64,000 bases of DNA from Magallana gigas (Eukaryota). Below, piece by piece: positions 8,431 through 54,000 of the stretch. How positions within the stretch are numbered: the first letter of the stretch is position 1; the number at the start of each line of letters is the position of its first letter. Made by a program: the position numbers and the translations under genes. The stretch spans positions 39,184,001-39,248,000 of the forward strand of contig NC_088855.1 of assembly GCF_963853765.1 (NCBI RefSeq). Reading direction: 5' to 3'. The notes under the pieces are model-generated. The model was not told the DNA's origin. It did not search any database and worked only from the letters and a program-made list of their open reading frames with translations.

Positions 8431-10978
8431 TTACAGTGTTGCTTTTAATTGATATATGTTTGGATTCCACGACTCATTATACAGGGATATATTTCCGGAA
8501 TAACCAACTTCTCTGTATACTTCCCTACAGTTTTTGTCAATTATGTGAAGATACATCGAAGTAATATTTTGCATCCATTTAAATGCGTTATACGTTGAGT
8601 TTCCTCTTCTAGTGCAGTATTCACATCGTACAATTGGCCCAGTAGTCAAACTGTCAACATATTCTTTTACTTTTATCGTAAACTGTGCACGTAAGAAATT
8701 GTATATACTCTTAGATACCTCTATTGGGTTCAATGCAAGATTTTCATACACAAGTCTCTGAATACGTCCTTGATATTTACCAGTTAACAATTTCACGTTA
8801 CGAATATCTTCTAACATCTTGCCACAAAAAAGTCGTGAAAAACTTTGAAAATGGTTTCTGTTAGATTGAGTAAGGTTACCGATTAGTTGTGAGTGAAGGA
8901 TTGCTCTCGAGTCTCGAACCAAGTGAATGACTTTGAGTGACGGCAGCCTTTTAAGCAAATAACCGACCGAAGCTGTATGCAAACGTATAGTTTTGTACGT
9001 CCTTGAATTAGCTTCAACACAAGCCTTTTGTAAAATTGATATGCATGGAGCTATAGTCATAGCTAGAGAGGAATCATTTGAACGATCTTGTCGGGTGCAG
9101 TTAAAATACAAATCGTGCTCCGGGGTGTAAATATGAATGAATTCATTGTACAAGCTGTTTAAGTCGATGTCCTGGAAGTTACAGGTGAACCAGTTCAGCA
9201 TCATTTCTGTCTTTAGTTTTTCAATGTCTGTATCATTATATGATAACCTGTACAGAAGGAAACAAGACACATAAAGGGATGGAAACCATTCGTTTCTTTT
9301 TATTAAAACATGTCTGGTATGTGTAGATTTGAAAAAAGGATAAAAAGATAGTATGGCCTCAAAGACACCTTCGGTTATTGCATTACAGGGAAAATCATCT
9401 CACTAACGGATGAATATAATTCTTCGCTGGATAGGAAATATCCTATTACATGTATATCCTGTCTCAAAGGAGTGGAATTAAAATTGTTTTTGAAAGATTA
9501 TCATAAAACAAGAGGCCAATGGGCCTTTCGCTCACCCGAGGAACACATGTATGATATAATCAGCTGGATGGAGTCATAATATAGCTATATGTATCTGGAC
9601 AATGTAGTATAAATCATGTAGATCCTGTTAAAATAAATATACATTTTTCACTCTTATGTTTTAATCAAGTCCTTTTTCTAACAGGATGGTTTTATAGTCA
9701 TATCAAATGTTGAGCATTGTAGTTCTAAAACGACTAAAATGACTAAACAATTGTTTGTTTATATATGTGATATAAACCTACATCAAGCTCTAAACCCCTT
9801 CTAAGGCCCAAGAATCATCCAGTGTTCACAGACTAAACAATTTAAATGAATCAGCTATATTTCAAATTGCTTGCATACGTGTAGGGGTAAATATATTCTA
9901 ACATTTCAGTTTTTGTGAATAAAAATGTTTTCCTTTGTAAACTTGGTTCCCCAATGTGGCCCCACCCTACTCCTCAAAATTTTGATTCCAACAAATTTGA
10001 ATTCACATCATCTGATGTTGCTTTCCCTAAGTTACAGCTTTTCTAGGCAAAAGGTTTTTTAGAAGAAAACTTTCTATCTATACTCCTATGTTAATTTTGC
10101 CCACCCCCCCCCCCCTCCACACACACACTGTGACTCGACCCTATCCTATCCCCGTGGATCATAATTTGATCAAACTTGAATTTACCCTACCAGTTGCTTT
10201 TACACAAGTTTAAGCTTTCCCGGTTGATTAAATTCTGAAAATGAAAAGAAGATTTTTAAAGATTTACTCAATATATTCTTATGTAAAATTTCGACCACCA
10301 TTGTGGCCCCACCTTACCCCTGGGGGTCATAGTTTTCACACATTTGAATCCACACAACATGAGAATGCTTCCACACAAGCTTCAGCTTTCCTATCTGATT
10401 ATTTTCTGAGTGGATTTTCAAAGATTTACTCAATATATTCCTATGTAAAATATTGACCCCCCATCGTGGCTCTGTCCTATCTGCGGGGTCATGGTTTTCA
10501 CAACTTTGAATCTACCCTACCTGAGGATGTTTTACTTAAGTTTAAGCTTTTCTGGTCGATTAGTTTCTAAGATGAAGATTTTTACTGTTTTTACTCCTAT
10601 CTTAAAAAAATGACTCAAATATCTAAAAATATTTCAATATTTCCTAAATATCTCCCCTGAAAAAAGGGTGTGGTCCCTAATTTTCACTACTTTGAATCCC
10701 TTTGGGGACAAAGGTTGCTTCGTGCCATGTTTGTTTGAAATTAACCCAGTATTTCTTGAGAAGACATTTTAAATTGGAAAGGTTTACGGACAGACGGACG
10801 GACAGACGACAACAAAATGTGACCAGAAAAGCTTACTTGAGCTTTCAGCTTGCTTTGTACCATGTTTTGTTGAAAGTAACCCAGTAGTTAATGAGAAGAT
10901 GTTGAAAATGGGAAAAGTTAACGGATACGCAGACAGACAGACAGAAGGAAGACAAACAAAATGTAATCAGAAAAGCTT

Positions 10979-28299: not shown

Positions 28300-28431
28300 N
28301 NNNNNNNNNNNNNNNNNNNNNNNNNNNNNNNNNNNNNNNNNNNNNNNNNNNNNNNNNNNNNNNNNNNNNNNNNNNNNNNNNNNNNNNNNNNNNNNNNNNN
28401 NNNNNNNNNNNNNNNNNNNNNNNNNNNNNNN
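28300..28431. other. Assembly gap (132 N)
   Basis: Run of N seen directly. Confidence 1.
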
Positions 28432-29189: not shown

Positions 29190-31463
29190 TTACAGTGAAA
29201 CACTTCGTTGGTACGCATTTGGATTCCAAGTATTTTTTCTGCTTTTTAGATCGTTAAAAGACAGTTGTCGGTATCCAATTTCTCTGTATATTTCTCTGCA
29301 ATGTTGGTCGACTATTCGATGATACGTCGGTCTTATAGTTTTTATCCATTTGAATGCATTATAACTTGAATTCCCCCTGTTTGTACAGTAATTACACTTA
29401 GACACTGGCCCAGTTGTTAAATAGTTCACAAAACCTTCTACATTTCTATCAAAGCGGGCATTTAAAAAATTGTACAGTTTTTTTGAGACCTCGATTGGAT
29501 GGACAGCAAGATTCTCGTACACAAGTCGCTGAAGTCGACCTGGATAGTTTACCACCAACGACTTCATATCAATGACGTCATTATGCATTTGTGTACATGT
29601 GAGATTGGATATATTACTAAATTTAATCTTGTCTGCTAAACCCTCGACCAGCTGTGACTGCAAAATTGCCCTAGGGTCTCGAATAAGATGAACAACCTTT
29701 AACGAAGGTAGCCTTTCGAGCAATTTACTTACTGAGGCCATGGGCAATCGAATGGTTTTATATATCCGTGAATTGGCTATTTTGCATCGTTCTTCTAAAA
29801 TGTGTAAACACTTATCAATGGTTCTTATGAGTGCAGATTTCATTCGGAGCCCTCGTAAGCAATTGAAATACGTGTCATGTTCAGGTGTAAAAATGTGGAT
29901 GAACTCGTTGGATAAACTTAGTAGGTCAATTTGTCGGAAATCACAAGTAAACCAATTGTACAACATATCCGCCATCATATTATTTATGTTTCTGTCATCT
30001 TGTGCGATTCTGAAAAGACAAGAAACAAAATGATCAACAAAATAAAAATTCTTAATGTATGTAAATGTATGAAACATGATAGACAGTCTTGACGTAGAAA
30101 AAGAGTGATATAAGACTGTGATTTAAATGAAACTTTTATAATATAATTAACTTAAATAAATCTCTCAAATAATTTATGTTTCGACACACATTCACTTGCA
30201 ACTAACCATTAAATAATATTCCGTTCATTTATGCGCTCTAGCATATTTTTCAACAAGAAAAAAAATCGGTTTTGCTAAATACTTCAAGGTTTAAACACCA
30301 ATTTTAAGTAAAAAATAAATGAACAAGCAATTAAGACAAGATTCAAGTTCTGATAAACTCTTAACATACTTTGAAAAAAAAGAAACCCTAAGGAATTATT
30401 CTTATTCCTAGTTTAAAAAAACGGTATCACATTTTAATGCAAAACAACAATCATATACATGTATTGCATACGAAATCACCTGATAAAAGTAATACTAAAA
30501 CAAATTTAACATCTGTAGCAAGAAAATTGTTAACAAATTATCTAATTTACATAATTTTGAGGAGAGGTATTACATTGTAGTTTAAAAAAATAAAAGAAAA
30601 AAATCTTGTGTAAACATATACCTTATTCTTGTCCCATTCAGAAATCGAACGGGACTGTTCTGCTTTATTGAGAGTTCAATCAATCCATGGAGTGGTTCAA
30701 ATATATAAAAATCTCCATGGTTGCAGCGAATAATGTCAGCGGTTAAGGATGACCCACTTCTCATGTAACCTAGCACCAATGTCATGGGCACATGTACTGT
30801 TAAATAAAAAATTACCGAAAAAAATTGAAGAATATATAAATTATATTATTTTCAGTTTCTTTCAGAGCTTCATCTTTTATAAATATTTCTGTTTTTACAT
30901 TAGAAAGAATACCCGCAGACTTACTGCTTTTATTTCCTTCCAAAGATGTTTTCTCATTGTTACATTTTGTAATTTTAATACTTGATATCTTTGAGACTTT
31001 GTATTGCTTCCTAAAGAAGTCTAAAAGGACAACAAAAAATATACATGTCTACACACCCAAAACAGAACATTTGGTACACGATACATTTCATCTGCAGATA
31101 TTTTTAAAATTTGTGTGTGTAAAATAAAAATAACAGAAACCGATTCAAAACTCTACCGGTTTCATTGTAATCAAGATTACAATGAAACCGGTAGTGTTTT
31201 GAATCGGCTTTCTGTTATTTTTATTATATATATATATAATTTAAAAAAAACAATCATTAATTCCTATTGCTTTTACAAATCTGTGAAAAATTTGTTTTTA
31301 GAATATTGCATGAACGACCTACAACAAAACTGATTTTTAAATTACCTTTGCCCTCTTCAGGTCGTAGGAAGTAGAATCCATGAAACGCACATAAAATAAT
31401 GATACATGTAATTGCAAGGAATAATATAAATATTTTTCTTTTTACCGTAAATATCAGTTGCAT
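29190..31463 (-). CDS. Carbohydrate (CHST-like) sulfotransferase paralog C, complete, ~370 aa
   Basis: Exons 31463-31346 (MQLIFTVKRKIFILFLAITCIIILCAF..., phase 1), 30796-30622 (175 nt, YMRSGSSLTA) and 30009-29190 (LIRDPRAILQS) total 1113 nt in frame. Confidence 0.88.
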
Positions 31464-35797: not shown

Positions 35798-38700
35798 CTA
35801 TACCTGCATGAGGTCAACGTGCGCTTGCCATGTTTCTTTTACCTTCTTCAATTGTTGATAAGACAAATACCTGTATGCAAGTTTTTGATAGACATTAGAG
35901 CAATATTTGTCTATGACTTTCAATCTATCTTCCTTTATGTCTTTCTTCCATTTGTATGCATTACCCAGTGCATCGCCTCGCTTTGTACAAAAAGAACATT
36001 TCAATATGGGCCCAGTTGTAATGTTTCTTATCTGGTATTTCACGATCTCCATGTATGGAAGACGTAAAAACTGATACATTTTGCCAGCTACAAATATGGG
36101 GTTCCTACAGAGGTTTTCGTAAGCCAATCGTTTAAGCCTAGATGGATATTTTGTGTAAAGCTTATTGAATTCTTCAATATCATTGTCGATTTGTTCACAT
36201 ATCATCTTTGATTTTTCCTCGAGTTCATTCCAGCGCAGCATCCCAACTCGCGCCCGAGACAGAAACATTCCCCGAGGGTCACGCACTAAATATATCACCT
36301 TCAGATGTCGAATTGTCTGTAAAAGATATTCAACTGACTTCATTGGGGTTCTTATTGTCTTAATGGTCACAGAGGTCATTGAAAGACATCTATCTTGTAG
36401 TATACCGACACATCTCTGTACTGTTTCGATGCTTATATCTCTTGTTTTGTTCCGAGGACCCAAACACGTTACATATGTTTCATGCTCTGGTGTAAAAACG
36501 TCAAGAAAAAAGTCCGTCAGGCTTGCCATGTCCAATTCCTCAAAATTACAGGTAAACCAGTTGTAAAGTGTTTTCGAAATGAGATCGTTAATTTCATTTA
36601 CAGTTGATATAGCTCTAAAATATAAAAGGAATTCAAGGCAAAATTAATATTTGAAATAAAAACAGAATTAGTAAAAATGGACTTAAGATCCCTACAATAT
36701 ACATTTCACTTTTTCATAAAAAGTTATCAAAAACACCAACCTAGTTGATCCATTTAAGAAAGTAACTTCTGTTTGGTTTTGTAATGATTTTATTAATCCA
36801 TGAAGAGGTTCAAATAAATAGAAATTCTTCGATTGCAAGGTCAGTATTTCTCCAGTCAGGGTTGAGCCAGTCCTTGCGTAGGCCAACAATAGAGTCATTC
36901 GCACTGCCCGAGACACTGCGTAAATACAGACTTGCGTCTTATTTAACATGTTTCAAACTATTCACCAGTAAAACTACATTTATTAAACGGATGACAAATT
37001 TAAAAAATATTTACTGGTATGCAAATCAAACGAAGGAACTAGTATATTAAAATGAATAGAATACTGTAGAATCATTTAAATTCGAGGGGGCCAATTTTCT
37101 TGGATTGTGGGTTTTTTGTTTATTCGTGGGGATGTTATTTCGTGGGTGCGTCGGTTTTCATTTTCAGTAGCAAAGATAACTCTTTCTTAATTTGTTTTCG
37201 TTGAGGATGCAAATTCGTGGAGGAGGGCTACCCACGAATACCACGAAAATTGATCCACCACGAATTCTAATAATTCCACAGTATGAGAAAAAAGATGATT
37301 TTTTTACAATATATAAAAGATGAAAGAGTTATTAAGAGCACATCACATATTACGCTAGTATGTGGTCACAAAACAAAAATTCAAAGCTCTGGCTAAATAA
37401 AGATCACGATCAACTAATGTAAATGTGATCTAAGAATACATAAAACAGAGTATGAAAATCTCTGGTACCAACGAACTCCTCGAAATAGACATTCAAAGAA
37501 CTCCCAGTATGACACAAGGTTATACCTTTGGCAGAGGTCCTCTTCGTTCTCTGTTCAGTTGCTGTCTTAATTTTGCGTACTTTTGTCAGAGATTCTTGAG
37601 TCTGAAACTGAATGTCTGTAAGATGAAATCGTCTTACAAATTAATTGTGGCCTTGTGACCTTCAGTTGTTGAAAATAGGGATTGTCTCAAGTTGTCCTAT
37701 TTGCAAAGTTTCTGAATAGGTCCGACAACACGTTGGTATTACATGATATCTTAAAACACTACTGAAAACTACGTACTCCACGCGGTGATCAAATTAACCC
37801 GAAAAAAAATGTTGCCAAAACAATCAAATCAAGTCAAAATACAGAAAACATGTCCAATGAATCAGGTGTAAAGCGAACAAGTCCCTGGTCACAATAAACT
37901 GGAGACAAAGAAAGTCAATCATAATACGCAAATGATAAAGTAAATCTGTCAAAATAAGCAAGAGACAAGCAAACCTGTCATAACGAACCATTCATATAGA
38001 AACCCATCAAAACGAACCAAACATATAGAAACTTCTTATAACGAACAAGACATATATATAGAAACCTGTCTAACAACTGAGACACATAGAAACATGTTAT
38101 AACGAACCAGAAACCTGTGTTAACGAACCAGACAAATAGAAACCTGTTATAACGAACCAGACATGTAGAAACCTGTTACAACGAACAAGACATATAGAAA
38201 CCTGCCATAAAGAGCAACGTACACGTATATAGAAATTTATATTTACGAACCAGGTATATAGAAACCTATTATAACGAACCAGACATATAAAAACCAATGA
38301 CAATGACCATATCTACTGAAACCTGCCACAATGAACCATACACACAGAAACCTGTCATAACGATTCAGACATATAGAAACCTTTCAGAACGAACCAGACG
38401 TATAGAAACCAAAAAGAACCAGGCATGCAAAACATGTTACAACAAACCAGATGTAAAGTAAACCTTTTATAATGAACCCGTCACAAAAATAACAAACATG
38501 GAAAGATAAATAAATGTTCTGTTCATAACAAAATCAGAAAACCAAAACAGATATTGCAATCTGGTTTAAGGTGGTATGGGACACCTCCATGCTGTGACGT
38601 ATTATTTATCGAAAATAAAATCAAGTATAATTTCATAAATACATTCTTTCCCAATATTGTCACCTAACAGCGTAGCGCATTAGGAAAGAGGGTTCACTAC

Positions 38701-39042: not shown

Positions 39043-40120
39043 AAACCAGAGAAAGTAGTACATGTATATTAAATATTGAACATACTATGATATACATAAA
39101 AACCTCTTTACAACAAAACAGAAAAAATGGCAAAGTTTTAACGTTTTACAACATACAAGGGATATAGCAAACTTGTTGCAACTCGATATAATATATCTAA
39201 TTTTAATTCTTCACTTTTTAATCTGCAGAATCTATTTTTTTTTTATACCTTTTGTCATCTTTTTCTTGGTTCTCTGTCCAATTTCTTTCACACCTGTGGT
39301 GATACTATGTCGCGTTTTAAATTGAATGTCTGCAAAACAAATCGATTTAGCAGTAAAATTTACTTTTTCCTTAAAATAAATAAATTTCCTTATGCTTTAT
39401 CAATATTTTTTATATTCACATAAAATTTGAACTAAAACAATCAACACATTTGCACTCAAAGAAATAAAAAAAAAAATACCCGGTATATAGACCAATAATT
39501 AGGATAAACATTTTAAATACTATAACAGGCACGTAGCATCGTTTTTGAAAGTGGGGGGGCCAGACCCATCCAAAAAATCTTGACAAGCAAAAAAAAAAAA
39601 AAAAAAAGAAAAGAAAAAAAAGGAAATTTAAAGTTTTCCAAAAATCTTCAAAATCCTAATCCGTGGGGGGGGGGGGGGGGGGAACTCAACTATACTTCCA
39701 AAAAAATTCTTCCCTACCAAAAAATTTTTTCCTCCAAATCTTGAAATTCCTAATCCGTGGGGGGGGGGGGGGGGTAGTAACTTCAATTTGACTACTCATT
39801 TCCTTATTTTCGTATCAATTTTATACTAACTTCCAAAAAAGTGGGGGGGCCAACTCCATTATGATTCATTTTTTTATATGTAAATTTTAAAAAATTTGTT
39901 GCTGCGGGAAAAAGTGGGGGGGCCAGGCCCCCCCTGGCCCCCCCCTGATGCTACGTGCCTGTATAAATATCTGTAAGCGACATCACTTCTAATTAGTTTA
40001 TTATTCTTGGGCAAACAAGATGATTATCATATGTTAGTGCTTACCTTGATACAGATACACTGACATCGCCGTGCAAAGAAATATAACTATCAGACTGATA
40101 TATATCGGTTTCGATGCCAT
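35798..40120 (-). CDS. Carbohydrate (CHST-like) sulfotransferase paralog D, divergent, up to 5 exons, ~412 aa
   Basis: Exons 40120-40045 (MASKPIYISLIVIFLCTAMSVYLYQ, donor G|gtaagc), 39329-39249, 37615-37526, 36915-36741 (175 nt, AYARTGSTLTG) and 36614-35798 (LVRDPRGMFLS) total 1239 nt in frame. The two small stem exons are predicted from splice signals only. Confidence 0.8.
37064..37281. mobile_element. TA-flanked MITE in an intron of sulfotransferase D
   Basis: ta|ctgtagaatcatttaaattcg ... cgaattctaataattccacag|ta. Confidence 0.65.
37965..38450. repeat. ~30-bp minisatellite
   Basis: Tandem gacatatagaaacctgtcataacgaacca-like units, roughly 15 copies. Confidence 0.85.
38570..38880. mobile_element. 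TTAA-type MITE (Kolobok-like) containing a tRNA-like segment
   Basis: ttaa|ggtggtatgggaca ... tgtcccataccacc|ttat (one TSD mismatch). Internal tagcgcattagg ... gagttcgaatcc at ~38668-38734. Confidence 0.7.
38987..39038. repeat. (TA)n microsatellite
   Basis: Pure AT run. Confidence 0.97.
39526..39961. mobile_element. G/C-tract MITE with 5-bp TSD, in intron 1 of sulfotransferase D
   Basis: tataa|caggcacgtagcatc ... gatgctacgtgcctg|tataa; opposite orientation to the 23184 copy. Confidence 0.9.
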
Positions 40121-40527: not shown

Positions 40528-41795
40528 CTAGTTATGTTTATTCAAAATCAGGTGCCAGTAAGAAAGCATTCCTCTTTTTCCTAGCGTTACCCCTGTAAAT
40601 AAAGTAGTAAATAAATGTTATTATATACCATATACTGTATATGAATATTTTTTCAGATTCTAACTGATATTATCATTTATCATCATCATTTTACAAACAC
40701 CAGAATGTTATGTACACAGACATAAAACTCGAATTCATTATTATATTTACACTCAGTGCTGGGAACCGTAGCTACTGTTGTTTTTGGCGGGTCAATGGAC
40801 TCTTCGGATGTCTCAGCTGTTGAAAAAAAGTGTGAAATTAAAACTAGTTCCAAATATGCCATGTCATACTGTGATACACGTGTGTATTAATTTAACTCAC
40901 CATGTCGTGTTGGTGTGGTGGTGCTAGCTAATGGCGTCATCGTTACTGATGTTGTTTTGGTAGGAACGTGTGTTGTTGGTGCTTGGGATATATAAAGATT
41001 GATAGAACACACACTTTTGTACGTTTTTGATATGTCATTTTTATCATGTCAGTGTCATGTTATTAGTATATCATTTTATTATTTCTCAGCAGCAAAATTT
41101 AGTTTGTTGCAAAAAGTATTCCCTACCATATTCACATATGTAAGGACTGATAAATGGTCTATCACAAGGAACATCGTGCCAATGACCCCAGTCCTTAAAC
41201 CGCATACCGACACAATCCTCTTCTCTCGGTACCGGTGGTATCGGTACAAGAAAACGTTTTTTTCCATGGATGTATTGGTCTGGTTGTCCATATGCCCAGT
41301 CCATGAAAGAAGTCGTCTCCCCTGGATAAATCAATAAATAATAATAAAAAAGGTACATTTTACATTACTTAAATAATTGAGTTTTTGTGTAACACCAGTT
41401 TGTTCATAAGTTTCATACTAGTAACTTATTGCACTTAACAAAACCCATTCTACGAAAATAAATACATGTATCTAAGTTACAGAATAAGAATCTAAACACT
41501 GATTAATGACCGGAGGACCAAACAAATGTTCCTTCTCTTTTGGAATCGGTTAATCCAATCAATACGTAATCTCCATGGAACCACATGGAAAATAGGGTCG
41601 TCAATAGGAATTGCCGTTCCTCGGGGCTGTTAACAGATACTAGGTGTCCTCCGTGGTTTCTGCAGGCGCTTTCAGCCTCGACCCAGCTAAGACCTCCATC
41701 TAGCTTAAACTCATAGCAATGGCCATTGTATGTTCTCAGATAGGGAGAGTGTAGGAGACTTTTGGGGCAAGTATGAGGATCACCACCTCCCCCTC
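40528..41795 (-). CDS. C-type lectin 4 (single CTLD plus Thr-rich tail); signal-peptide exon not located
   Basis: Exons 41795-41511 (TYNGHCYEF...WVEAESAC...LIGLTD...FVWSSG), 41321-41127 (QPD...EEDC...WHDVPC...YICEY), 40981-40901, 40816-40751 and 40592-40528, all phase 1. The last junction is uncertain. Confidence 0.78.
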
Positions 41796-44700
41796 CTAAA
41801 TAGGATACAAAGTATAAAGGGAACTAATAAGGCATTGCTATAAACAGTAATTGAATCGTTTAAATTTTCTCTTCTATGGATGATAATTGTGTAGATTTTA
41901 GCATTACAAGCCATCAAACCATGCATTTCGTTACTGTCTTTTATCAGAGAAATTTACTTAATATATCATTTACTCTAATCTTAATTGTGTATGAATGGGA
42001 TCTGTAAGAAATGTGAAAGGTATAGTTATTGTAAATACAAATTTCACCGTTCACTGCATGCAAAGTTTAACCATTATTTGATCTACAGTAAAACAATTTT
42101 AGAGAGCTATTTACGAACCTAGATAAGCTCCGGAAGAGTAAAACAAAACAACAAGGGAAAATAGTACACGCTGCTTCCTATCGTATAACATGGTGGTCTT
42201 ATCTTCAACCGATCTTCGTTACAATATATGGGTTATCAGTTGGCTAAAATATGATTGGTCAGTAAATTCGTATATTATATGTAACAGTAGAAATCAAATG
42301 AATAAACAATACACAAAATGTAAGAAGACTGATTATCTGTTATGTTCTGAAAATGTACCGTAGACGTATGCGCATTTTTAAAAGAGCAGGTTGTTCTGCC
42401 TTTATGGACAGGTCAATTTCTTGATTGACAGAGAAGTTCCTTACACCGACGTCTTCGTAATTATATAAAATATAGATGACCATTACAAAGATTCATATCG
42501 TCCCAATTTGACAAAAGTCTTGATTACATCAGGAGCAAAGCATATTAACTACTACTAATATTATGTTTAACAAGATTTTTTTAAGGTCATAAAGACATTG
42601 GTACAAGTGATCTGAATGGTTCTATTTTAGGAATAAGGAACCATTCTTTTGAGTTTTATGAGGTAATCAAAAAAGGTCGGAGTGATCACATCCAGTGAAG
42701 CCCGGAGTGTACGTGATAGATCTGGTCACGCCTGATCGTATTTAATCACCTCATAATATTAAAAAAATGATTCCTTATTACTTACATTTACTGTGTATAA
42801 TTTCCATCATTTGTACGATTGTCATTTAAAATAGTCATTGATGTAATGTATTGGACTATACATTACAGAATCGATTTGTAGTGCTATCATAGAAAAGACA
42901 CTTCAAAATGTAAATATACTTGAATATTATTAAGATAATATAGATCTATAGCATCGATCGTATTGTTTTGTTGTGAACTTATAAGTATCATATAAACTAG
43001 AATGATAAGCAAGGCTAAGAATAGTTTCGTCTAGACGTCCATGTTATCTTTACGACTGAATTTAGACACATAAATGTTGGTATTTACTAGTAAATCCCCT
43101 ATGACTGGTTTGATTCCTGTCCATGTCAATGGTTGAACTTACAGTTTTGCTGTCCATTGCTCTACCAAATTCACTGGGGTGCAGTAGTCTACTATAATAC
43201 TGTTGAAAACTGGATTTAGGTATTAAATATTTAGGCGCTTGCTTGCAGGAAGCTTTAGAGCTCATTTGCGGTTTCTCAACAGTCCCCTTGTAGTAGAAAT
43301 TAAACCCTTGTTAACAGACAATACCATCATGATTACACCTTCACACTTGTCACATAGACAAAAATAAAGTCGAAAATGACATCATTGCTCTTCGTGCACT
43401 ATGATATAGTATAAGTTTATACGATCATTTTTTAAAATATACATCGTTGAATATAAAGATGGTGCTTAGGCGTGATTGCAAAAAACAAGTTCTTTGAAGT
43501 TGTTTGCATTAATAACTTTGTTCATATCATACTTATATAAATTCGAACGTATAATTATTCATTTTATTTCCTTTAAATTGAAGTGTTCTTGAAAAAACCG
43601 GTGATTTCCGATTTAAGAATTAGATTCTCTTAAATTTGCTTGTAAAAATCAAGTGAACTTAAGGATTACATTTACTCAGGGGCGAATATTTTTTTCTACT
43701 AATAGGAACGAAAAAATACTTATTCTACATTGTAGCCCTACTACTGTGGTGCTCTTTTTCACTTTCAAATTACTAAGTCAATGACCTACTTTTTATGCTA
43801 GTGACCTCTGAATGTTTGTTGAATAAAACTGTCAAAATTGTCCACCCTTTCTAAGATTTTCTTTATTTTGCGATTTTTAGAAATAATAAAACAAATTATT
43901 GGTTAGAAAATGATAAAATATGAATAGCTTTACTAGTTTCATATTTCAAAGAATCGTTTTAAGCTAATATTTTAAATTTAACTTAGTCCGAATTTCCTCT
44001 ATCAATTTTCAAAATTCTACCCATTTTTGATCAAGTTTTACAAAAAACTGACTAATAGTAGCTCCAAACCATTGATTGCCTAAAGCTTATTTTATTGTCT
44101 GTATTCTTTTGACATTAACATTATATAAGGTCAATGATCAAATTTTCGAGATATTCTATCTGGAATTATTTTAATTATAAGTATTTTAAAGATTTTCATA
44201 TCGCGTGCTAGCAAGTGATATACAATAATACACAATATAATACAACTATAAAATATGTAAAATGATGTGAAAAAACACGTAGAAACTTAACTTTTGCAAC
44301 TACACAGCTACAGAAAGTTTTTAAGAGAAAATAAGAAATGAAAAATTAGTCCGAATTTCCTCTGTATCAACCTTTATCTACCTTTATCGTAGCATAGCAT
44401 CATCAAATAAACAAAAAATGGATGTCAATATTGATTTTTGTTAATAAAATTGTTATTTTGTGTTTTTAAAACAGCTTTTATCTTCATGCAGGTATTGAAT
44501 TTTGTAAAATGATATTTTGAAATCTCAAACCCTGAGTAAACGAAAAGCACTTTGCAAAATTATTGCTTAGTAAGTCGATAAATTTTTGTCATCCGCTCAG
44601 AAATTTTACTTTCATCTTTGCCTTATATGCAAATGAATATTTTTGTCCTCTACTCAAATGTATATACTTACATTGTAGCTTCTGTAGAAGCAATTCTCTG

Positions 44701-45148
44701 ATTAGATGCCCAACGCGTTTGCACTGTCGAAAGCCGAACGTTAGTAATGTATAAAACATTTTTTTCGAGCGATCATAATGAATCCATATGTATGATCAAC
44801 CTTATTATGCAAAAAAAAAAAACAACTATTGAACAATATAAACATTTTAATTTAATTTTTTTTTAAAATCATTGTCAAATAATGAACAGCTAACTGTTAA
44901 ACTGTGCTTTCTTTTGGAGTCTTTAAACTGTTTATAATGAATTATTTCGGTTTTGTCAGTTTCTATTCGACCACGATCAGAATGGGAGGGGTTGTAAACA
45001 AGAACATTTTTAAAATCGTTTTCATCATGAAATGATTATGGTCAATCATGTATAGGCATAAGTTTTTTCCGGAAAGTGGGAAAATGGTTCATTTAAATCG
45101 GTGAGAGTAAAAGTTAAGTTGTTAAATACACTCAAGCGATGATGCGGC

Positions 45149-47058
45149 CTATGCTGCAGTACTGGGAACAGTGGATGGTTGTGATGTATCAGCGTTTGCA
45201 GGCTGTGTTGTTGTGGCTGCTCTTTGTACTGTAAAATAAAACAATGCATTTAGCAAAGATATCGACAGAAGTAATTGTGTGTATTTTTGTATCATTTTAA
45301 GATTCTATTTGAAGAATCAATTTGCTTTTTTGCAAATTTGTTTTCAGCAACTGTTTCTAATCCATCTAAACATTTTGTACATTTTTCTACACATGCTTAA
45401 TATCTACAGAATATGGTATCATTCTTAAAGTATTATTGGGAGAGAATTTTTGTTGGGGCGTCATCAAGTTTGATAACCTTTCGGCCATAATTATCACCTC
45501 ATGATACTCAAAGAACGCTTCCCTAATACTTATTTTTATATAATTTTCAGCAATTGTACGATTAAATATTAAATTGTTGACATTAATTCGTTATTTTCAA
45601 TTTGAATGTGTAATTATGCAAACCCCGCTTGGTTACACCATTTACGTCACTGATGACATATATTAAAGATGTGTACTGCAGAATTGTTATCACAATACAA
45701 AGACATTGGAAAATTATATATTAAGAAATCGTGTTATGTTTCCAGCCAAGTGTTTTGAAGAGATGACTTACAGTACTCGCAAACATAGGGATAGCGTTCG
45801 TGGATTAATCCAAGTGGATCCTGTTTTACACAGGGAATATCATTCCAATGGCCCGCGGGGTCTGAGTATTTCATGATGGCGCAGTCTTCGTCTGCGTCTA
45901 ACAAAAATCGCCTCCTTCTGCTTGGTTCGCCGCTTGCCCAATACGTGAAGGTAGACGTCTCCCCTACAGCACACGTAAAATTAAGTCTCGTGTCTTAATC
46001 CTTGAATTTTATATCCTAGCATGTCCCTCTAATAAGAGGCAACATTAACAAGTAAAACTTGTTTCATTCTATCACAAAATTCTTTTTTTTTCGCCATTTG
46101 AAGCGGAACTGTGAATATTAGTTGCAAATACTAGTACATGTAGTTTGGTAATGCAGATGATAATGCAAAGTGCCATATGGCATTTTTAAATGATAAAACT
46201 GGATTGAATCGGGGTTAGATATGATTTATACATGTAATAAGTTACCTGTGACCCATTTCCACGTCCCTTCTTTTTCTGCATCAGTGTATCCGATCCAAAT
46301 GCCACGACCGTGAAAGGGGAATAATTTCAGAGCCGATATAATGAAGTCTTGTTCTGCTAAATCGTTGACTACAACCAAAGTCCCTCCCCGCGATTTGCAG
46401 TCGTTTGCGGCATGTGGCCAATCAGTCAAGTGGTGAAGGTTGAATTCATAGCAATGATCTTGATACACCTTCAACGTATTACCTTGTTGTAGATTGGCAG
46501 GGCAATTTGAAACATGCGCGCCACCTATAACACATATTACAATAGCTCTTAAAGTTACTTATTCAATTACATACATCATCTCAATCTAGATTTTTTAAAA
46601 ACAAAATTACAGCCTTTTTAAAAATCGATTAGTCAATTTTGTTTTTTGTTTAATTACCCGTTATATCAAACCCATATAATAACTTGAAAAAAGTTCATTT
46701 CAATTTCAATTCTTTACTCACTCAACACTAGTACAGTGGTATTTGAGGTTCAAAATAAGCATGTACAAATGAACACAAAAACAATGATTACATGTACAGC
46801 CGTAGTAATAAAGGTTTTTAAAAAGTTGAGTTTACAATACAGTAGGTTGTATTGGATTGTTTTTGGAAGAGCAGAAAATCTTGACAGCAACTTTATTTTT
46901 CTACATTGAAAGTATTCATCAGCTCGTTAAATTCTGTAATATATGGGTTTTCATATTGATGAGACAGTGATTCAAGATCTAAGATAACCTTCTGTTAACA
47001 TGCTGAACTTACAGACTGCGTTAATCGCCAGGAGAAACCAGAGAATCGAGGAGTGCAT
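45149..47058 (-). CDS. C-type lectin 3 (signal peptide, single CTLD, Thr-rich tail), ~198 aa
   Basis: Exons 47058-47013 (MHSSILWFLLAINAV), 46524-46246, 45963-45772 (EPS...EDC...WNDIPC) and 45228-45149 total 597 nt in frame. Confidence 0.88.
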
Positions 47059-47668
47059 CTTTAAGCCTATGGTCTGCACACCTGCTAGTCATGATGTAAT
47101 ATATGATATGTTTCTTCTTATCTCTAACTCAGGGTCCTTAAGAGCAAGGTGAGATACAGGGACTATCCTTGTGAGAATAACTGTCCGGAATCGGGAAAAA
47201 GCGCGCTGTTAACTTTTGAGAGGAATTATATGGAAAGAAAATAAGCAGATTATAGCCTTATATGATACTAATTAACATTTCACCTCTTTTCCACCATCAG
47301 CAAAACCACCATCTTCACATTAAGTTATACACGTACATGTATATTGCGCATTATTCAAACTTTTTGGTTTTTTCGTATTAGGTCAAAAATAATAACGATC
47401 ATGTGCTATTTGAATGCATCAATGTTAAATCTTATATGCGTTCGAGAGATACATGTACCGTGGCATTTACTTAACATAGTCGTTTGTCTCAGAAAACGAA
47501 TAATAATGAGACATCATATCTTGATTAAAACCAACATCATACGTAAAATATTTTTCTCACATGACAATGCTTCTACAGTGTAAACAAATGAGCATTGTTA
47601 AAAACTGATTCTCTAAGACTATTATCTTGATTATGTATTTATTAATTGGAAGAAAATGAACGTTAAGT

Positions 47669-48688
47669 TCACAAAGTAGGAATACTAGGCGTTTCTGGTA
47701 CAGTCGTGGTAGCGAGTTCTATTGTAGATGGCGCTATAGTAGAACCGACAGTTGGGGACGGAATTACAGCCGAACCTTAAACAAACGTTTGTCAAGAACT
47801 TTTAAATATATATGTAACCAATTCAGATGAAATAGTAATATTTCGAATTATGTGGCAATTTTGAAGCTCTTACCGTATTCGCAGACGTAAGGAAAGTGTT
47901 CCTTCACGATTCCCAGTGGGTCCAACTTTTGACAAGGGTAGTCGTGCCAGTGACCGGAGTCGGAGTACTTCAGGAGGACACAGTCCTCGTCCGACACACT
48001 GTCCAGGATAAACCTTCTTTTGTGGTGAGAATGAGGCTGCCCATGCGCCCAGAAAGTAAAAGTGCTGGTCTCTCCTACATTTCATATATTTACAAAACAC
48101 ATCATGTTCTATTCTGTTCAAATCAGTTGAAAATAATGATTATTGGACTTGTTACTTTTATATACAATTTCTTTCACATTTTGTGTTTTATATATATTTT
48201 CCTATGTAGGGTTTAAAAAGGATAACCTGTGACCCATGTAAAGGTTCCTTCGTGTGTCATATCATTGTAACCCAGCCATATGCCTGTCCCGTGGAACGAA
48301 ATGGCCTTCAGTGCGGACATGAGAAAGTCCTGTTCCGCCCTGTCATTGACCGTCACCAGAGTCCCTCCTTTGGAATGGCAATCTTTCTGGGCCGCATTCC
48401 AGTCCTTAGTATGACGGACCTCGAATTCATAGCAGTGGCCCGTGTGGGTCTTCAGGGTGGCGTTCCGTTGTTGGAGTTCCGTCGGACACCCCTGAATATC
48501 GTCTCCATCTGTTTTCAAAATTTTACATTGACTTTCATAAATTTCATATTATTTTTTATTGTTTTATCTTTAATTAATATGATTTGAGTAATATCAAAAG
48601 TTAAAATTTATAATTAAAATTGCAATACAAACTTACATGCAATAATTGCCGACGAAAGAATATACAGGAACACGTGTAACAACATCAT
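47669..48688 (-). CDS. C-type lectin 2 (signal peptide, single CTLD, Thr/Pro-rich tail), ~213 aa
   Basis: Exons 48688-48637 (MMLLHVFLYILSSAIIA), 48508-48227, 48074-47874 (QPH...EDC...WHDYPC) and 47775-47669 total 642 nt in frame. Confidence 0.88.
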
Positions 48689-49031
48689 AAGGACTGCACT
48701 GCAATTACGCTGTCTTATCTAATTTATATGAAATGTGCAGTGCATATTCAAGGTCTGCTCATAAGATTGCATTGGTAGACTCTTCGGAGTTCATATATTA
48801 TACATGTACGTGCTGTCGTCACAAAGAGTACTATAGTATAAAGTCATTGGTATAATATAGTGACCCGCTAGCTTGTAGGCAGATGACATTCATCAGATAG
48901 GTAATATATAATATATTCAATCACCCAAAAGAGTGAAGTCACACAGTGTGCTGGGTGTTATCATCTTATGGAATGTAGTTAGCTGATGGGGTACAAGAAT
49001 CCGATAGGGTTTAGTCATTCTTTATAGTTAA

Positions 49032-49522
49032 AGTGGCATGTTCACTATTTTGGTCAAAAATTATTTTTCCGATTTTAATATTTACAATGCTTCAGAAAGG
49101 CATTTTTAATAAGCAACTGAAATTTGAGTGCCATTTTTTTTTTAGTTATGAGCGAGTTACAGAGCTTGAAATTCTTCGCAATGTAAACAAAGCGTTTGTT
49201 TACATTTTGAAGGTTGAAGCAAAAATTTCAGTTTTGAACCTAAAACGAATGTATCAAATGTTAGGAACTGTTTATCTATGCTTAAAACAAATAAAAAGAT
49301 AGACAAATAAGCTGGATTTTTTTTTACTTGTATATTGAACCTATGTAAACAAAAACAGGGCACGAGCCTTGTTTACATGACAAAGAATTGAGCCCTGTAT
49401 CTTACTTATAACTCTACGAATGACTCTTAAATTTCATTTGATCATTAGAAATGCATATCTAAAGCATTGTAAATAATAAAAACATAAAAATAAAATTTGA
49501 TCAAAATCGTGACCATGCCCCT
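49032..49522. mobile_element. TTAA-flanked Kolobok-like MITE
   Basis: ttaa|agtggcatgttcactattttggtcaaa ... tgatcaaaatcgtgaccatgcccct|ttaa. Confidence 0.82.
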
Positions 49523-50092
49523 TTAAAATGCCCTGTGCTTGAAGTAATCCGATAGCGAAATACACTAAGGAGGGAAAGTACAAAATGAATATTTTCGGGG
49601 AATTGTTGACCATATGAAATTGTCAATAGTAGAGGCAATTAATGTTACAGGTAATGTACGTGTACAGTAAATATAGATTCCGACTAGGGAATAAACCTCG
49701 AGGGGAAAGTTTTGGATAAATTGTTGACCCTTCATCTTCTTTCATAGCAACCAGTTCCAATTAAAGGAATTTGAGTATACATTCTTTGATATAAGGTTGC
49801 AAGCGTAATTAACATGTATTTGCAAAAATATCAAGAAATTTCCAACCTACCTTTTTTTGTTTGAAGAATGTATTGTTGGCACATTTCATCATATTAATTT
49901 CCTGTAACTTACACATACACACTACTGGCATTTTAGACGCATCTGGATGCATGGCCTGCAACATTTACAAGCCTCCGATTCTGGCGTGTTTTGCAACAAT
50001 ACAGTGCTTTTTTAGTCTGTTTTGAATTGATGTTGAAAGATGGGGTCAAGTTTATTCCAAAATATGACAAGACTGATGTGATTTAAAGCCTT

Positions 50093-50475
50093 TCAGGGCT
50101 GCGTTCAAGATCGTAGCTGCTACGTAGGGCTACGTAGTTGAACGGTAGGCTAACCTAGCCGCTACGTAGATATTCGTAGCTTAAATATTTTAAGCTAGGC
50201 ATCAAATTCAAGATGGCCATCTTAGTTACCTCTTTGAAACAAACATGAACTCTATTTATATAGTGATATGTTGTTCATCCTTTAAGTTATAATGAAATTT
50301 AACATGCATATTCCCGCTTGAAATTAACAAATTATGTCAATGTAATTAGTCTTTAGTTGAATATTCCAACTTCAAATCTGAGACCTAGCGGCTAACCTAG
50401 CGGTCCGTTCAATAGACCTAGATATCCACGACCTAGCGGCTAGGCTATCTGCTACGATCTTGAACGCATCCCTGA
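50093..50475. mobile_element. MITE with 25-bp TIR and gctacg/cctagc subterminal repeats
   Basis: tcagggctgcgttcaagatcgtagc ... gctacgatcttgaacgcatccctga (1 mismatch). No clear TSD. Confidence 0.75.
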
Positions 50476-51033
50476 TAACGTTACTATCTAAATTATAGTC
50501 TATTTTTTTCACGGAAGGATCCAAATATGTGCATGTATGAGATATACATCATCTTCTAAAGTTAAGGGTTTCTTAAATTACGCACTTTTCCTCTAGAGAG
50601 ACATGCAATGAAAGCAATGAAAGAATTACATTTGGGGTAAAAACTAAAAACATAGTCAGATGAATTTTTTTACGTGTCGAATTTTCTTAATAAGGACTGA
50701 TGAAAACTGTATCCGCTGATTTCTTGTAATAAAGAGTTTCAATGAAATAGGAAATATATTTACACTGAAAGAAGTTATATCAGGTTGTTGTATGTTACAA
50801 ACTTCTGCTACTATCGACCTCGGCTAATTATGAGTCATGAAATGACATTTTGACACAAGATATAAGAATAAGACACCAACAGCAATGATGGTGAGAGTTT
50901 TGACGAATGCAGAAATATAGAATCCTAATACGTTTAGTAATAACATAATTATAGTAGCATTATAGTACAACAAAGTTAAGCTTTTCTGTGTTTTCTTCTT
51001 TTATTGAAGCACGGACGCAACATTTGTTTCAAT

Positions 51034-54000
51034 TCATCCTACGACAAGTTCCCCCACGGACCCAGCGACTTTAGCTGATGCCGTGGAAGCCATGACGTCA
51101 GTTTCCGGTGTGGTGGTAGGAATAGTGGTTTGTGTGGTAGATGGGGTCACGGTCTGCGGTGTTCCGACAGTGGTAGCTGTTTGCCCTTAAAGAACGGACA
51201 AGAATAAGAATACTCATACATTCCAATCTGTCTACCATGCAAACAACAATGAATACTCTTTAAAGTATCGGCAAGTATTTTCACGTACTGTACTCGCATA
51301 CGTATGGGAAATTTTCGTGCACAAGGCCTAGAGGGTCCAGCTTGAGACAGGGGTAATCGTGCCAGTGACCCGAGTCGGTGTATTTCAACAGCACACAGTC
51401 CTCGTCTATGAGATGAATGTTAGTAAGGCCAGTAATGGTGTCCAAAATCAAACGCTTCTTGCCAATATGGGGTGAGGTTATCACTCCGGGTTGTCCTGCG
51501 GCCCAGTAGGTGAAAGTAGCTGGCTCTCCTACTTTTGAGCAAATTTGTATCTTTTTATATATCTGTATATGATTTTTAAAGATAGATCAGTCAATTGGTA
51601 TAATATATGTTTAGTTATCAAATAGACCGAATATTGCCAAAATCGGACTCTAAAGAGCAAGGTGACTTAAATCTGTCTAAAAACTTTAAACAATTATAGA
51701 TTTATTTTATGGAAAGCTTGTACTTGAATATTAATAGGCCTGCTTTTGGAAGCCTGTACTTGAATATAGGCCTGCTGGTTATTCAATAGATACCGGAGAC
51801 CCATGAAAATTTCCCCTCCTGCAACTGGTCAGTCAATCCGATCCAGACTCCCTGACCATGGAATGAGAACGACCCGAGAGCGGACATAAGGAAGAGTTGT
51901 TCCTCCATGTTGTTGACCACAACTAGTGTCCCTCCCTTAGAAGCACAGTCACTCTCCGCCGCCTTCCATTCAATATGGCGGTGGACCACAAACTCGTAGC
52001 AATGGCCATTGTATGCCTTTAGATTTATGTTTCGTGAGAGATTCGGTGGACAGTTTTCGATGTTGTCGCCATCTTAAGAAAATGGAAAGAGGGTGTGCTA
52101 TTTATCTACGACTTGGTCTATAATTGTAAATCGAATCAGGCACGTAGCATCGTTTTTGAAAGTGGGGGGGGGGGGGGGGGGGCAGACCCATCCAAAAAAT
52201 CTTGACAAGCAAAAAAAGGGAAATTTAAAGTTCTCCAAAAATCTTCAAAATCCTAATCCGTAGAAGGGGGGGGGGGGGGGGGGTAGACTCAACTATACTT
52301 CCAAAAAAAAAAAATTCTTCCCTACCAAAATTTTTTTCCCTCCAAATCATGCAATTCCTAATCCGTGGGGGGGGGGGGGGTAACTTCAATTTGACTACTC
52401 ATTTCCTAATTTTCTTACTAATTTTTTACTAACTTTCAAAAAAGTGGGGGGGGGGGGCACACTGTCGTGTATCCGCGCCGGTAGTGACATGTTTGGATAA
52501 CGTGAAAATGGCGTATCCATTGCAAAAACAATGAGTGTTGTGTCCTTTTTTCTATCGACAACGGGGTAAATATTAATTAAAATATCGTAATAGTCATTCA
52601 TATTTTTCTGAAGGTTTTGCAGTTGAAAAGAGTGTGCGTTATTTTCGTTCATCGTTTATAAAAACGACTTATTTGTAGAAAAATCAATCGTTAACGTGTC
52701 ATTTTAACGCTAAAACCAAGAACTATTTCTAGATTACGTAGATAATATAACACATACTAAAAATCTGAAGCAGCCAAAATTAATTTAAAACATTGCATTA
52801 ACCAAATAAAACCAAACCGATGTCTTTTTAATACATTAATATGTATAAAAATAGCAATAACTTCATGCACCTGCTAAAGAAGTAGTACGGTTTGGATAAA
52901 TAAATTATTCCGGTTTGGATGCTAAAATATCAATTGTGCAAATGGTACGGTTTGAATAATTTAAAGTTTAAGGATTTTTAATATTTTTATATAATATTAT
53001 AATGACATATTATAAAACCAAAATACTTCCACATGTTCGAAGGGAACTAAAACTGGATGACTATAAGTTTATTTCTTTAGACAAGCCTGTTTTTTTCCTC
53101 TGATAAAATGGTATATTTAGTGTATAATTGATCAGAAATTGATTATTTAACGAATAAGGATCCGAATCATTCTTTGATCGAATATCATGAGTTGATTATT
53201 TTGGTCGGGGCGTGGTCAAACACAATAAAGCTCGAAACGAAATTACACCTCACAATATCGAAAGAATGATTCCTTATTACTTATATTAATTTAATTCACA
53301 GCAATTGTACTTTTAAATATTTTAATAAGGAAACGTCATTTGAATTTATTGGACTGAATATGAACAAATTGATACTTAGCGTTATCAAATGAAAAGACAT
53401 TGAAAATGTAAATATAGTTATATCAAGTTTTTTTTTACTGACATTTCAAAAGAATACTTTCTTTAATTTTAAATTATAAAGAAAATATAAGTATTTCACC
53501 TTTAACCTGAAAAGCAATATATCATATACACACCTTAACAGACAACTATCTACTACTTTTATGGCAAGCGACTTTATGATGTGTTTTTTAGTTATTCTGA
53601 AATGATATTTATAATCGTGAAGTACGTTTAACGGAGAACGTGCTTGGTAATAATATTATGAAAGTGAGCCTCGTTTACATTCAATACCAAGCCTGTACAT
53701 CGCTAGACAAAGAAAGTTCTACAATTATTTCACTCCCAGTGATTATACTGATATAATACAAAGTACCATAGATGTCTGCCAAGTCATATATTTACTCTGT
53801 TGTTAGAAATAGTTGGTCCAAAAAATTCAAGTGATGACGAGACCTAAGTAAACATCGCCATTTTATATGTACATTAAATTTTATTCAATCATAATTCTCA
53901 CCAGAAAATCAAAACAATAAATATGTATCTATGTATATCAAGAGGTTTTGGTGACTCATGCGGGAAATGAAGGTGGTGTCACTGCAGAAAAAGTACAAAA

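Follow-up and report, generated by a model that had tools for sequence, protein, structure and literature searches.

Basic runs in the extended ligand loop of four tandem perlucin-like lectin genes of Magallana gigas: a possible site of convertase cleavage

Four tandem genes, here designated L1 to L4, encode small secreted perlucin-like proteins that consist of a C-type lectin-like domain (CTLD) and a short mucin-like Thr/Pro tail. They are found in a stretch of 64,000 nucleotides of Magallana gigas DNA (NCBI RefSeq assembly GCF_963853765.1, contig NC_088855.1, positions 39,184,001 to 39,248,000), hereafter the window, to which the positions given below refer. The four proteins belong to a pteriomorph-bivalve subfamily with an extended loop between the motif at the EPN/QPD position and the Ca2+-ligand Glu of the EDC motif, and in each of them this loop holds a run of basic residues that ends in Arg and is directly followed by three hydrophobic residues. 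Judged from sequence, the single most likely reading of the motif, put forward tentatively, is that a convertase-type protease may cut after this Arg and so yield a disulfide-linked two-chain lectin.

The basic run and its conservation

The four loop sequences listed in the initial annotation of the window were found to match exactly on re-reading (Table 1). The loops of L1, L2, L3 and L4 comprise 27, 14, 10 and 19 residues, respectively, compared with a median of 6 in a set of 145 distinct loops collected from other CTLDs. Lengths in this set were taken by regular expression, starting behind the QP/EP dipeptide and ending ahead of the [DENQ]-Cys pair, which makes them some one to two residues greater than the count applied to L1–L4 would give. 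The ten-residue linker of L3 is no longer than those of CTLDs of the asialoglycoprotein receptor (ASGPR) type. A dibasic pair is present in five unrelated loops of the 145 (and in one allelic variant of L4), and a dibasic pair followed by three hydrophobic residues occurs in none of these 145 background loops. The basic runs are encoded by different codons in the four genes (AAGAAGCGT, AAAAGAAGG, AGAAGGAGGCGA and AAAAAACGT), and what has been conserved is therefore the protein and not the DNA.

When 1.84 billion representatives were searched with a profile built from the exon-B peptides of the four genes, no more than 78 hits reached E ≤ 0.001, with a sharp step after the first eight. Orthologues of L1, L2 and L4 were found in Crassostrea virginica and those of L1 and L2 in both Saccostrea echinata and S. 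cucullata, two related proteins are present in Pinctada imbricata, and remoter members occur in Mytilus, Tegillarca, Haliotis and Potamilus. The oyster and Pinctada sequences comprise 13 distinct loops, drawn from four paralogue groups in Magallana/C. angulata, C. virginica, S. echinata and S. cucullata and from the two P. imbricata proteins. All 13 have a run of two to four basic residues followed by [FL][IL][LV], the motifs being GKKR-LILD, GRKR-LILD, GKKR-FLLD, HKRR-FILD, SHRR-FLLD, GKR-FILD, GKR-FLLD, RRRR-FLLD, GKKR-FLVP, GKRR-FILG, RRRR-LLLD and GRR-FLLD. The final basic residue is Arg in every case, the residue preceding it is Lys or Arg interchangeably, and a Gly stands directly before the run in ten of the 13 loops, including L1 and L4 but not L2 and L3 of this genome.

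The initial annotation had raised the question of whether the basic site is kept while its flanks vary; in all 13 oyster and Pinctada orthologues the basic cluster is indeed kept, the remaining loop ranging from 10 to 36 residues and varying in both length and sequence. Variation of this kind is seen even within the species, since L4 variants carry PIPPVPRE, PVPRE, PIPPRE or PIPLVPRE after FLVP with an unchanged GKKR, and a population variant of L3 has RKRR instead of RRRR. An irregular copy is the L3 orthologue of S. cucullata (L008:10640-10730, JAVVLV010009465.1), with two in-frame stops between the conserved Trp and R-H-T-R-FLLD. Its NCBI model XP_062612346 (P0009) omits the W…GEP…basic segment and joins …WTSG straight to FLLD. 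The orthologue is perhaps a copy in decay, or else a peculiar splice form beginning exactly with the residue behind the putative cut.

In Mytilus two groups of relatives can be told apart. One of them, like Haliotis, has a linker of five residues without basic residues, and the other has a homologous extension in two states, …NT-G-FLF-AGGSN-EDC and …NT-RR-FLL-SDGSK-EDC. An Asp at +4 or +5 is usual in the basic-type loops and absent from the G-type loops. The basic residues are an addition to the extension: in oysters and pearl oysters they are fixed, and in mussels they vary from paralogue to paralogue. The hydrophobic triplet, which occurs in Mytilus without any basic residues (G-FLF), is therefore probably structural, and this takes much from the earlier suggestion that a cut would serve to expose a hydrophobic new N-terminus.

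The insertion is retained in the messenger RNA, so the concern that it might be spliced out can be set aside for L1–L3. RNA contigs from three runs span exon B without an internal joint in L1 (51288-51529), L2 (47872-48073) and L3 (45779-45962), and the L1 insertion is present in contigs of runs X1, X5 and X9. In L4 the insertion is only 57 nucleotides long and therefore cannot hold an intron; a GT..AG pair of usable intron length was absent from the insertions of L2, L3 and L4. The L1 insertion was considered as an unspliced mini-intron (GTGATA…TACTAAC…CATAG, 79 nucleotides) and rejected, because its removal breaks the reading frame and the RNA contigs run through it.

Domain fold, processing signals and the case for cleavage

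Exon A of all four genes matches Pfam Lectin_C (PF00059) above the cut-off, with E values of 1e-10 to 2e-12. Exon B taken alone matches this family only in L4 (E = 0.007), being too divergent or too short in the others, and the full-length orthologues carry a precomputed PF00059 assignment. The cysteines of the long-form CTLD (CP…CYEF, DC, EDC, PC and CEY) are present in all four proteins. In the AlphaFold2 model of L3 the core blocks reached a predicted local distance difference test score (pLDDT) of 93-98, and block 121-130 (EPSRRRRFLL) had 66 as against about 95 on either side; in the L1 model the core was above 90, and residues 121-150, at 47-53, were devoid of secondary structure. These models, computed from shallow family alignments of 24-26 rows, thus predict a loop that is flexible or exposed. 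A Foldseek search with the L3 model retrieved the second carbohydrate-recognition domain (CRD2) of Endo180, lithostathine, mincle, CD23 and CEL-I with a probability of 1.00 and target TM-scores of 0.8-0.9, and phmmer matched 105 CTLD chains in the PDB, MGL and ASGPR2 being among the sequence and fold matches.

The residues of Ca2+ site 2 form an incomplete set, namely QPG with WHD in L1, QPH with WHD in L2, EPS with WND in L3 and QPD with WHD in L4, the Glu of EDC and the final Asp being invariant. Since this site is degenerate, sugar binding by L1–L4 is not established, and it is doubtful whether the loop deserves the name of a sugar-binding loop that the initial annotation gave it, with QPG, QPH or EPS at the first motif and WHD in place of WND in three of the four proteins. 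Three cysteines (Cys0, Cys0' and Cys1) lie N-terminal of the basic site and Cys2-4 lie C-terminal of it. The standard disulfide pairing of a CTLD includes Cys1-Cys4, and a cut at the basic site would therefore leave two chains joined by this bond, an N-chain with Cys0, Cys0' and Cys1 and a C-chain with Cys2-4 and the tail.

A second set of possible processing signals is found at the C-termini of the family. A C-terminus of two hydrophobic residues and Gly, with or without further basic residues, was counted in 23 of 47 single-CTLD relatives, 20 of which were flagged by a script and three, ending in RRRRR, added by eye. The terminal Gly is followed by nothing, K, KK, RK, KKRRL, RKRRL or RRRRR; L1 itself ends in …ELVVG, its C. 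virginica orthologue in …LVIGRK and mussel members in …IIGKKRRL, and the relatives with such ends come from Haliotis, Mytilus, Tegillarca and oysters (P0019, P0021, P0044, P0074, P0083, P0084 and P0125-P0138). The tails of L2-L4 lack such an end. In peptide precursors, a conserved Gly at the very end, with or without basic residues after it, is the classical form of a signal for C-terminal amidation and processing, and its presence here suggests that lectins of this family meet dibasic endoproteases, carboxypeptidases and an amidating enzyme. If the KKRRL and RKRRL ends are processing signals, Arg-Leu junctions would therefore be accepted. The genome contains several proprotein-convertase P-domain loci and several copper monooxygenase (PHM-type) loci. 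A description of an amidation-type C-terminus on a folded lectin was not found in the literature.

The course of events that we infer would be as follows. Within the secretory pathway, a proprotein convertase of the subtilisin-like type would cleave behind the final Arg and thereby open the ligand loop. In L1, L4 and most orthologues, which have a Gly ahead of the run, the newly formed C-terminus could then be trimmed by a carboxypeptidase and amidated by a peptidylglycine amidating enzyme; the same amidation would apply to the hydrophobic-hydrophobic-Gly ends of the family, with or without their basic residues. The minimum of a convertase substrate, [KR]-R at P2-P1 in a secretory protein, is found in the four genes and in 13 of 13 orthologues. 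Cleavage would account for the invariant Arg and the exchange of Lys and Arg ahead of it, for the Gly, for flanks that vary and a loop that is disordered, and for the signals at the C-termini.

Several points weigh against such a cut, the mechanism of which is drawn from sequence. The furin consensus R-X-K/R-R is present only in L3 among the four genes and in Pinctada P0008 (both RRRR), the P4 Arg being absent from L1 and L4 (G-K-K-R), L2 (H-K-R-R) and the Saccostrea L2 orthologues (G-K-R); the remaining sites are plain dibasic ones, and many folded secreted proteins carry plain dibasic sites that stay uncut. P1' is always Phe or Leu, and aliphatic residues at P1' are reportedly disfavoured under the rules of Nakayama and of Rholam. 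The hydrophobic triplet without basic residues in the Mytilus paralogues (G-FLF) counts on the same side, and the Asp at +4/+5 that usually accompanies the basic run (RR-FLLSD, KKR-LILD) is a hint of a charge pair with a structural role. Low pLDDT values obtained with 24-26 aligned rows give weak evidence of exposure, and cutting at Ca2+ site 2 might do no more than destroy that site.

Nearly as likely as cleavage is the possibility that the loop stays uncut and that the basic run and hydrophobic triplet form a conserved element of a non-canonical CTLD, with a role in ligand binding or in structure. The run could be a cationic or amphipathic patch for anionic ligands such as sulfated glycans, lipopolysaccharide or lipids, and mineral surfaces, or its Arg could take the place of Ca2+ by pairing with the conserved acids (EDC, WxD and the Asp at +4). 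The degenerate Ca2+ site 2, in which QPG, QPH and EPS and the WHD of L1, L2 and L4 nevertheless go with an invariant EDC acid and final Asp, accords with such an element, as do the occurrence of the triplet without basic residues, the association of the basic residues with Asp at +4/+5 and the missing P4 Arg at most sites. The sulfotransferase-domain genes that adjoin the cluster in Magallana and Saccostrea are a weak hint at sulfated ligands. A role of charge as such, however, predicts that Lys and Arg are exchanged everywhere, and yet the last residue is Arg in 13 of 13 loops; an uncut loop likewise leaves the Gly before the run (10/13) and the amidation-type C-termini unexplained, and it fits poorly with a loop predicted to be unstructured and with flanks that vary strongly in length even within a species.

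Two further explanations appear improbable. An exposed bait or activation loop might be attacked extracellularly, not by convertases but by trypsin-like proteases of digestive, hemolymph or microbial origin, since a Lys/Arg cluster in a disordered loop would be sensitive to trypsin and trypsin activates the CTLD proteins lithostathine and REG3; enzymes of this type, however, can do without a dibasic pair and without a strict final Arg, and the Gly-basic pattern together with the C-terminal Gly signals points to intracellular peptide-processing enzymes. It is slightly less probable still that the run is functionless and merely inherited with an insertion in a tolerant loop, as might be supposed from the alternation of RR and G among Mytilus paralogues and from the in-frame stops in this region of the S. 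cucullata L3 orthologue. Against this, the run is kept in four paralogue groups and Pinctada while its neighbours and the loop length change freely, its residues are encoded by different codons in the four genes, and it is invariant among within-species variants with insertions or deletions a few residues away.

Taken more widely, the convertase cut can be made part of a bolder proposal, which is less likely than not: pteriomorph perlucin-like CTLDs may be processed like peptide-hormone precursors, amidated at the C-terminus and, in oysters, pearl oysters and some mussel paralogues, nicked in the loop by a dibasic-specific convertase, the nick acting as a maturation switch for ligand binding. 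If true, this would be the first known disulfide-linked two-chain CTLD from one gene; a literature search turned up neither a report of proteolysis within a CTLD loop nor one that deals with these genes, which does not prove that there is none. Few immune, mucosal and shell-matrix families of bivalves are as expanded as the C-type lectins, whose specificity is usually read from the EPN/QPD loop alone. If the loop is cut, specificity and activity would be set after translation, bacterial single-chain recombinants, the usual assay of bivalve lectins, would misreport function, the CTLD would join the short list of domains nicked internally by convertases, and the amidating machinery would be shown to act on folded lectins. 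If it is not, the conserved cationic and hydrophobic motif still marks a distinct variant of the ligand site, across four paralogues that differ mainly there.

Gene models and neighbourhood of the cluster

The genes are all on the minus strand, and each has four exons separated by phase 1 introns, which encode, in order, the signal peptide, CTLD half A, CTLD half B and the Thr/Pro-rich tail (Table 1). The models were derived from splice phases, translation and the joints of RNA-run contigs aligned to 45700-51699, and hydrophobic N-terminal exons were called as signal-peptide exons and joined through RNA-supported splices. An RNA contig with a loose poly-T end at 50960 marks the poly(A) end of L1.

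Table 1. Positions of the L1–L4 genes, their exons and their loops in the window
Feature	Position	Strand	Basis or detail
Limits of the finding	41127-51528		last base of L4 exon B to first base of L1 exon B
Gene L1, 237 residues	50960..55562	-	splice phases, translation, RNA joint 51184/51288, poly-T at 50960
L1 exons	signal 55562-55520; A 52072-51794; B 51528-51289	-
L1 tail exon	from 51185	-	stop near 51034, poly(A) near 50960
L1 loop, QPG-VITSPHIGKKRLILDTITGLTNIHLID-EDC, 27 residues	51484-51404	-	KKR 51460-51452, G-K-K-R 51463-51452, then LIL
Gene L2, 213 residues	47669..49081	-	RNA joints 48508/48637, 48073/48226, 47773/47872; translation
L2 exons	first exon to at least 49081, signal coding 48688-48637; A 48508-48227; B 48074-47874; tail from 47775	-	stop near 47669
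L2 loop, QPH-SHHKRRFILDSVSD-EDC, 14 residues	48030-47989	-	KRR 48021-48013, then FIL
Gene L3, 198 residues	45149..47451	-	RNA joints 46521/47013, 45962/46245; tail acceptor predicted from sequence
L3 exons	first exon to at least 47451, signal coding 47058-47013; A 46524-46246; B 45963-45772; tail 45228 to about 45149	-
L3 loop, EPS-RRRRFLLDAD-EDC, 10 residues	45919-45890	-	RRRR 45919-45908, then FLL
Gene L4, about 250 residues	40886..42191	-	sequence and match to C. gigas XP_011437791 (P0111)
L4 exons	signal about 42191-42119; A 41795-41511; B 41321-41127; tail from 40981	-
L4 alternative or extra tail exon	near 40817	-
L4 loop, QPD-QYIHGKKRFLVPIPPVPRE-EDC, 19 residues	41277-41221	-	KKR 41262-41254, G-K-K-R 41265-41254, then FLV

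L1 is one residue apart from a C. angulata protein (P0082), L2 two residues apart from M. gigas A0A8W8K9M1 (P0079), and L3 is identical with M. gigas XP_065935786 (P0107), annotated as a perlucin-like protein. The best match of L4, XP_011437791, has GDFHTC…SLPHSP as against GDPHTC…SLLHSP in the window. In a six-frame profile search of the whole assembly only these four loci were strong (E < 1e-30), the next best having E = 3e-5.

What had been described as four tandem C-type lectins proved to be four CTLD units that belong to separate genes and are not bare domains. A single multi-CTLD gene, as suggested by the CTLD exon pairs, which are of phase 1-1 and multiples of three in length, was rejected because the RNA joints tie the CTLDs to signal and tail exons of their own and L1 has its own poly(A) end; it is also disfavoured by the current NCBI and UniProt proteins, which have a single CTLD. 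The old model K1QXW1 (728 residues, ‘macrophage mannose receptor 1’) merges L2, L3 and L4 with a downstream sulfotransferase and is unsupported by the RNA joints. One RNA contig of run X5 (2458 nucleotides), covering 46260-49081 on the minus strand, contains spliced L2 exons, the spacer between L2 and L3, the L3 signal exon and the unspliced first intron of L3, and it differs from the window at many positions. This contig could represent read-through, a second haplotype or an assembly chimera, and it may explain the fusion of the genes into K1QXW1 in the first annotation of C. gigas.

Between L1 and L2, RNA contig depth rises to about 14000 on both strands and in all runs at 48900-49700, with a peak at 49300-49500. 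The segment has many loose ends of differing sequence and overlaps the 5' part of the first exon of L2; it is probably a dispersed repeat with many transcribed loci, and an Rfam search of this high-coverage repeat gave no match. Short open frames with Pro runs and similar tails (…PPPPPTF.K…) are found at 52100-52650, in the first intron of L1, and at 39874-40014, downstream of L4; the run is G-rich on the plus strand and C-rich on the minus strand, and these frames are probably copies of a small repeat element. Downstream of the lectins and on the same strand, exons or genes with a sulfotransferase domain (Pfam Sulfotransfer_1 and _3) are located at 35801-36316, 29223-29702 and 8455-8937 (minus strand). 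In S. cucullata, too, the lectins are followed by a sulfotransferase (L008:13519-15044, JAVVLV010009465.1), and the neighbourhood is therefore conserved. A run of 132 N at 28300-28431 represents an assembly gap or a masked stretch.

Comparison with known systems

None of the ASGPR-type CTLDs, lithostathine/REG3, Notch, the insulin receptor and paramyxovirus F is known to combine a CTLD with an intradomain dibasic site. The closest relatives are the perlucins and perlucin-like proteins of molluscs, with the same order of signal peptide, long-form CTLD and Thr/Pro-rich tail and, in L3, the same NCBI name. Perlucin-like proteins of Haliotis and Mytilus can be aligned with L1–L4 along their whole length and have the WHD/WAD motif and the Gly C-terminus in common with them, but, unlike L1–L4, they have a linker without basic residues that is five residues long when counted as for L1–L4 (EPS-FLHNF-EDC in Haliotis and QPD-LQAII-EDC in Mytilus). 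By their best hits L1–L4 belong to this molluscan group, an assignment made from sequence. CTLDs of the ASGPR/MGL type, in which QPD is followed by an extended Gly-rich loop, likewise have a long QPD-EDC linker that shapes the ligand site, that of L3 being of similar length to the ASGPR linker; they have no basic cluster, are not known to be cleaved and, unlike L1, L2 and L4, possess a canonical WND Ca2+ site.

Lithostathine, a top structural match, and REG3 are secreted single-CTLD proteins whose activity is switched by a cut after Arg, as would be the case here; in them, however, trypsin cuts an N-terminal prosegment outside the domain, and a two-chain protein does not result. Two-chain, disulfide-linked CTLD proteins with a remodelled long loop are known in the snaclecs, the C-type lectin-like proteins of snake venoms, which resemble in this the product proposed for L1–L4 but differ in that their chains come from two genes, their loops are swapped and no intradomain proteolysis is involved. 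Multibasic sites in an exposed loop, with chains that stay together after the cut, are found at Notch S1, in the insulin receptor and in the paramyxovirus F protein, and RRRR-F of L3 is alike in form to the RRRR/KR-Phe junctions of the latter. These proteins have folds unrelated to L1–L4, for which cleavage is a proposal only, and the three hydrophobic residues followed by Asp in the oyster loops are not fusion-peptide-like. The precursors of neuropeptides and conotoxins use signals of the same form as the loop motifs G-K-K-R, G-R-K-R and G-K-R-R and the hydrophobic-hydrophobic-Gly(+K, RK, KKRRL) C-termini of the family; there the signals lie between the peptides of an unstructured precursor, whereas in L1–L4 the motif lies inside a folded domain of 130 residues.

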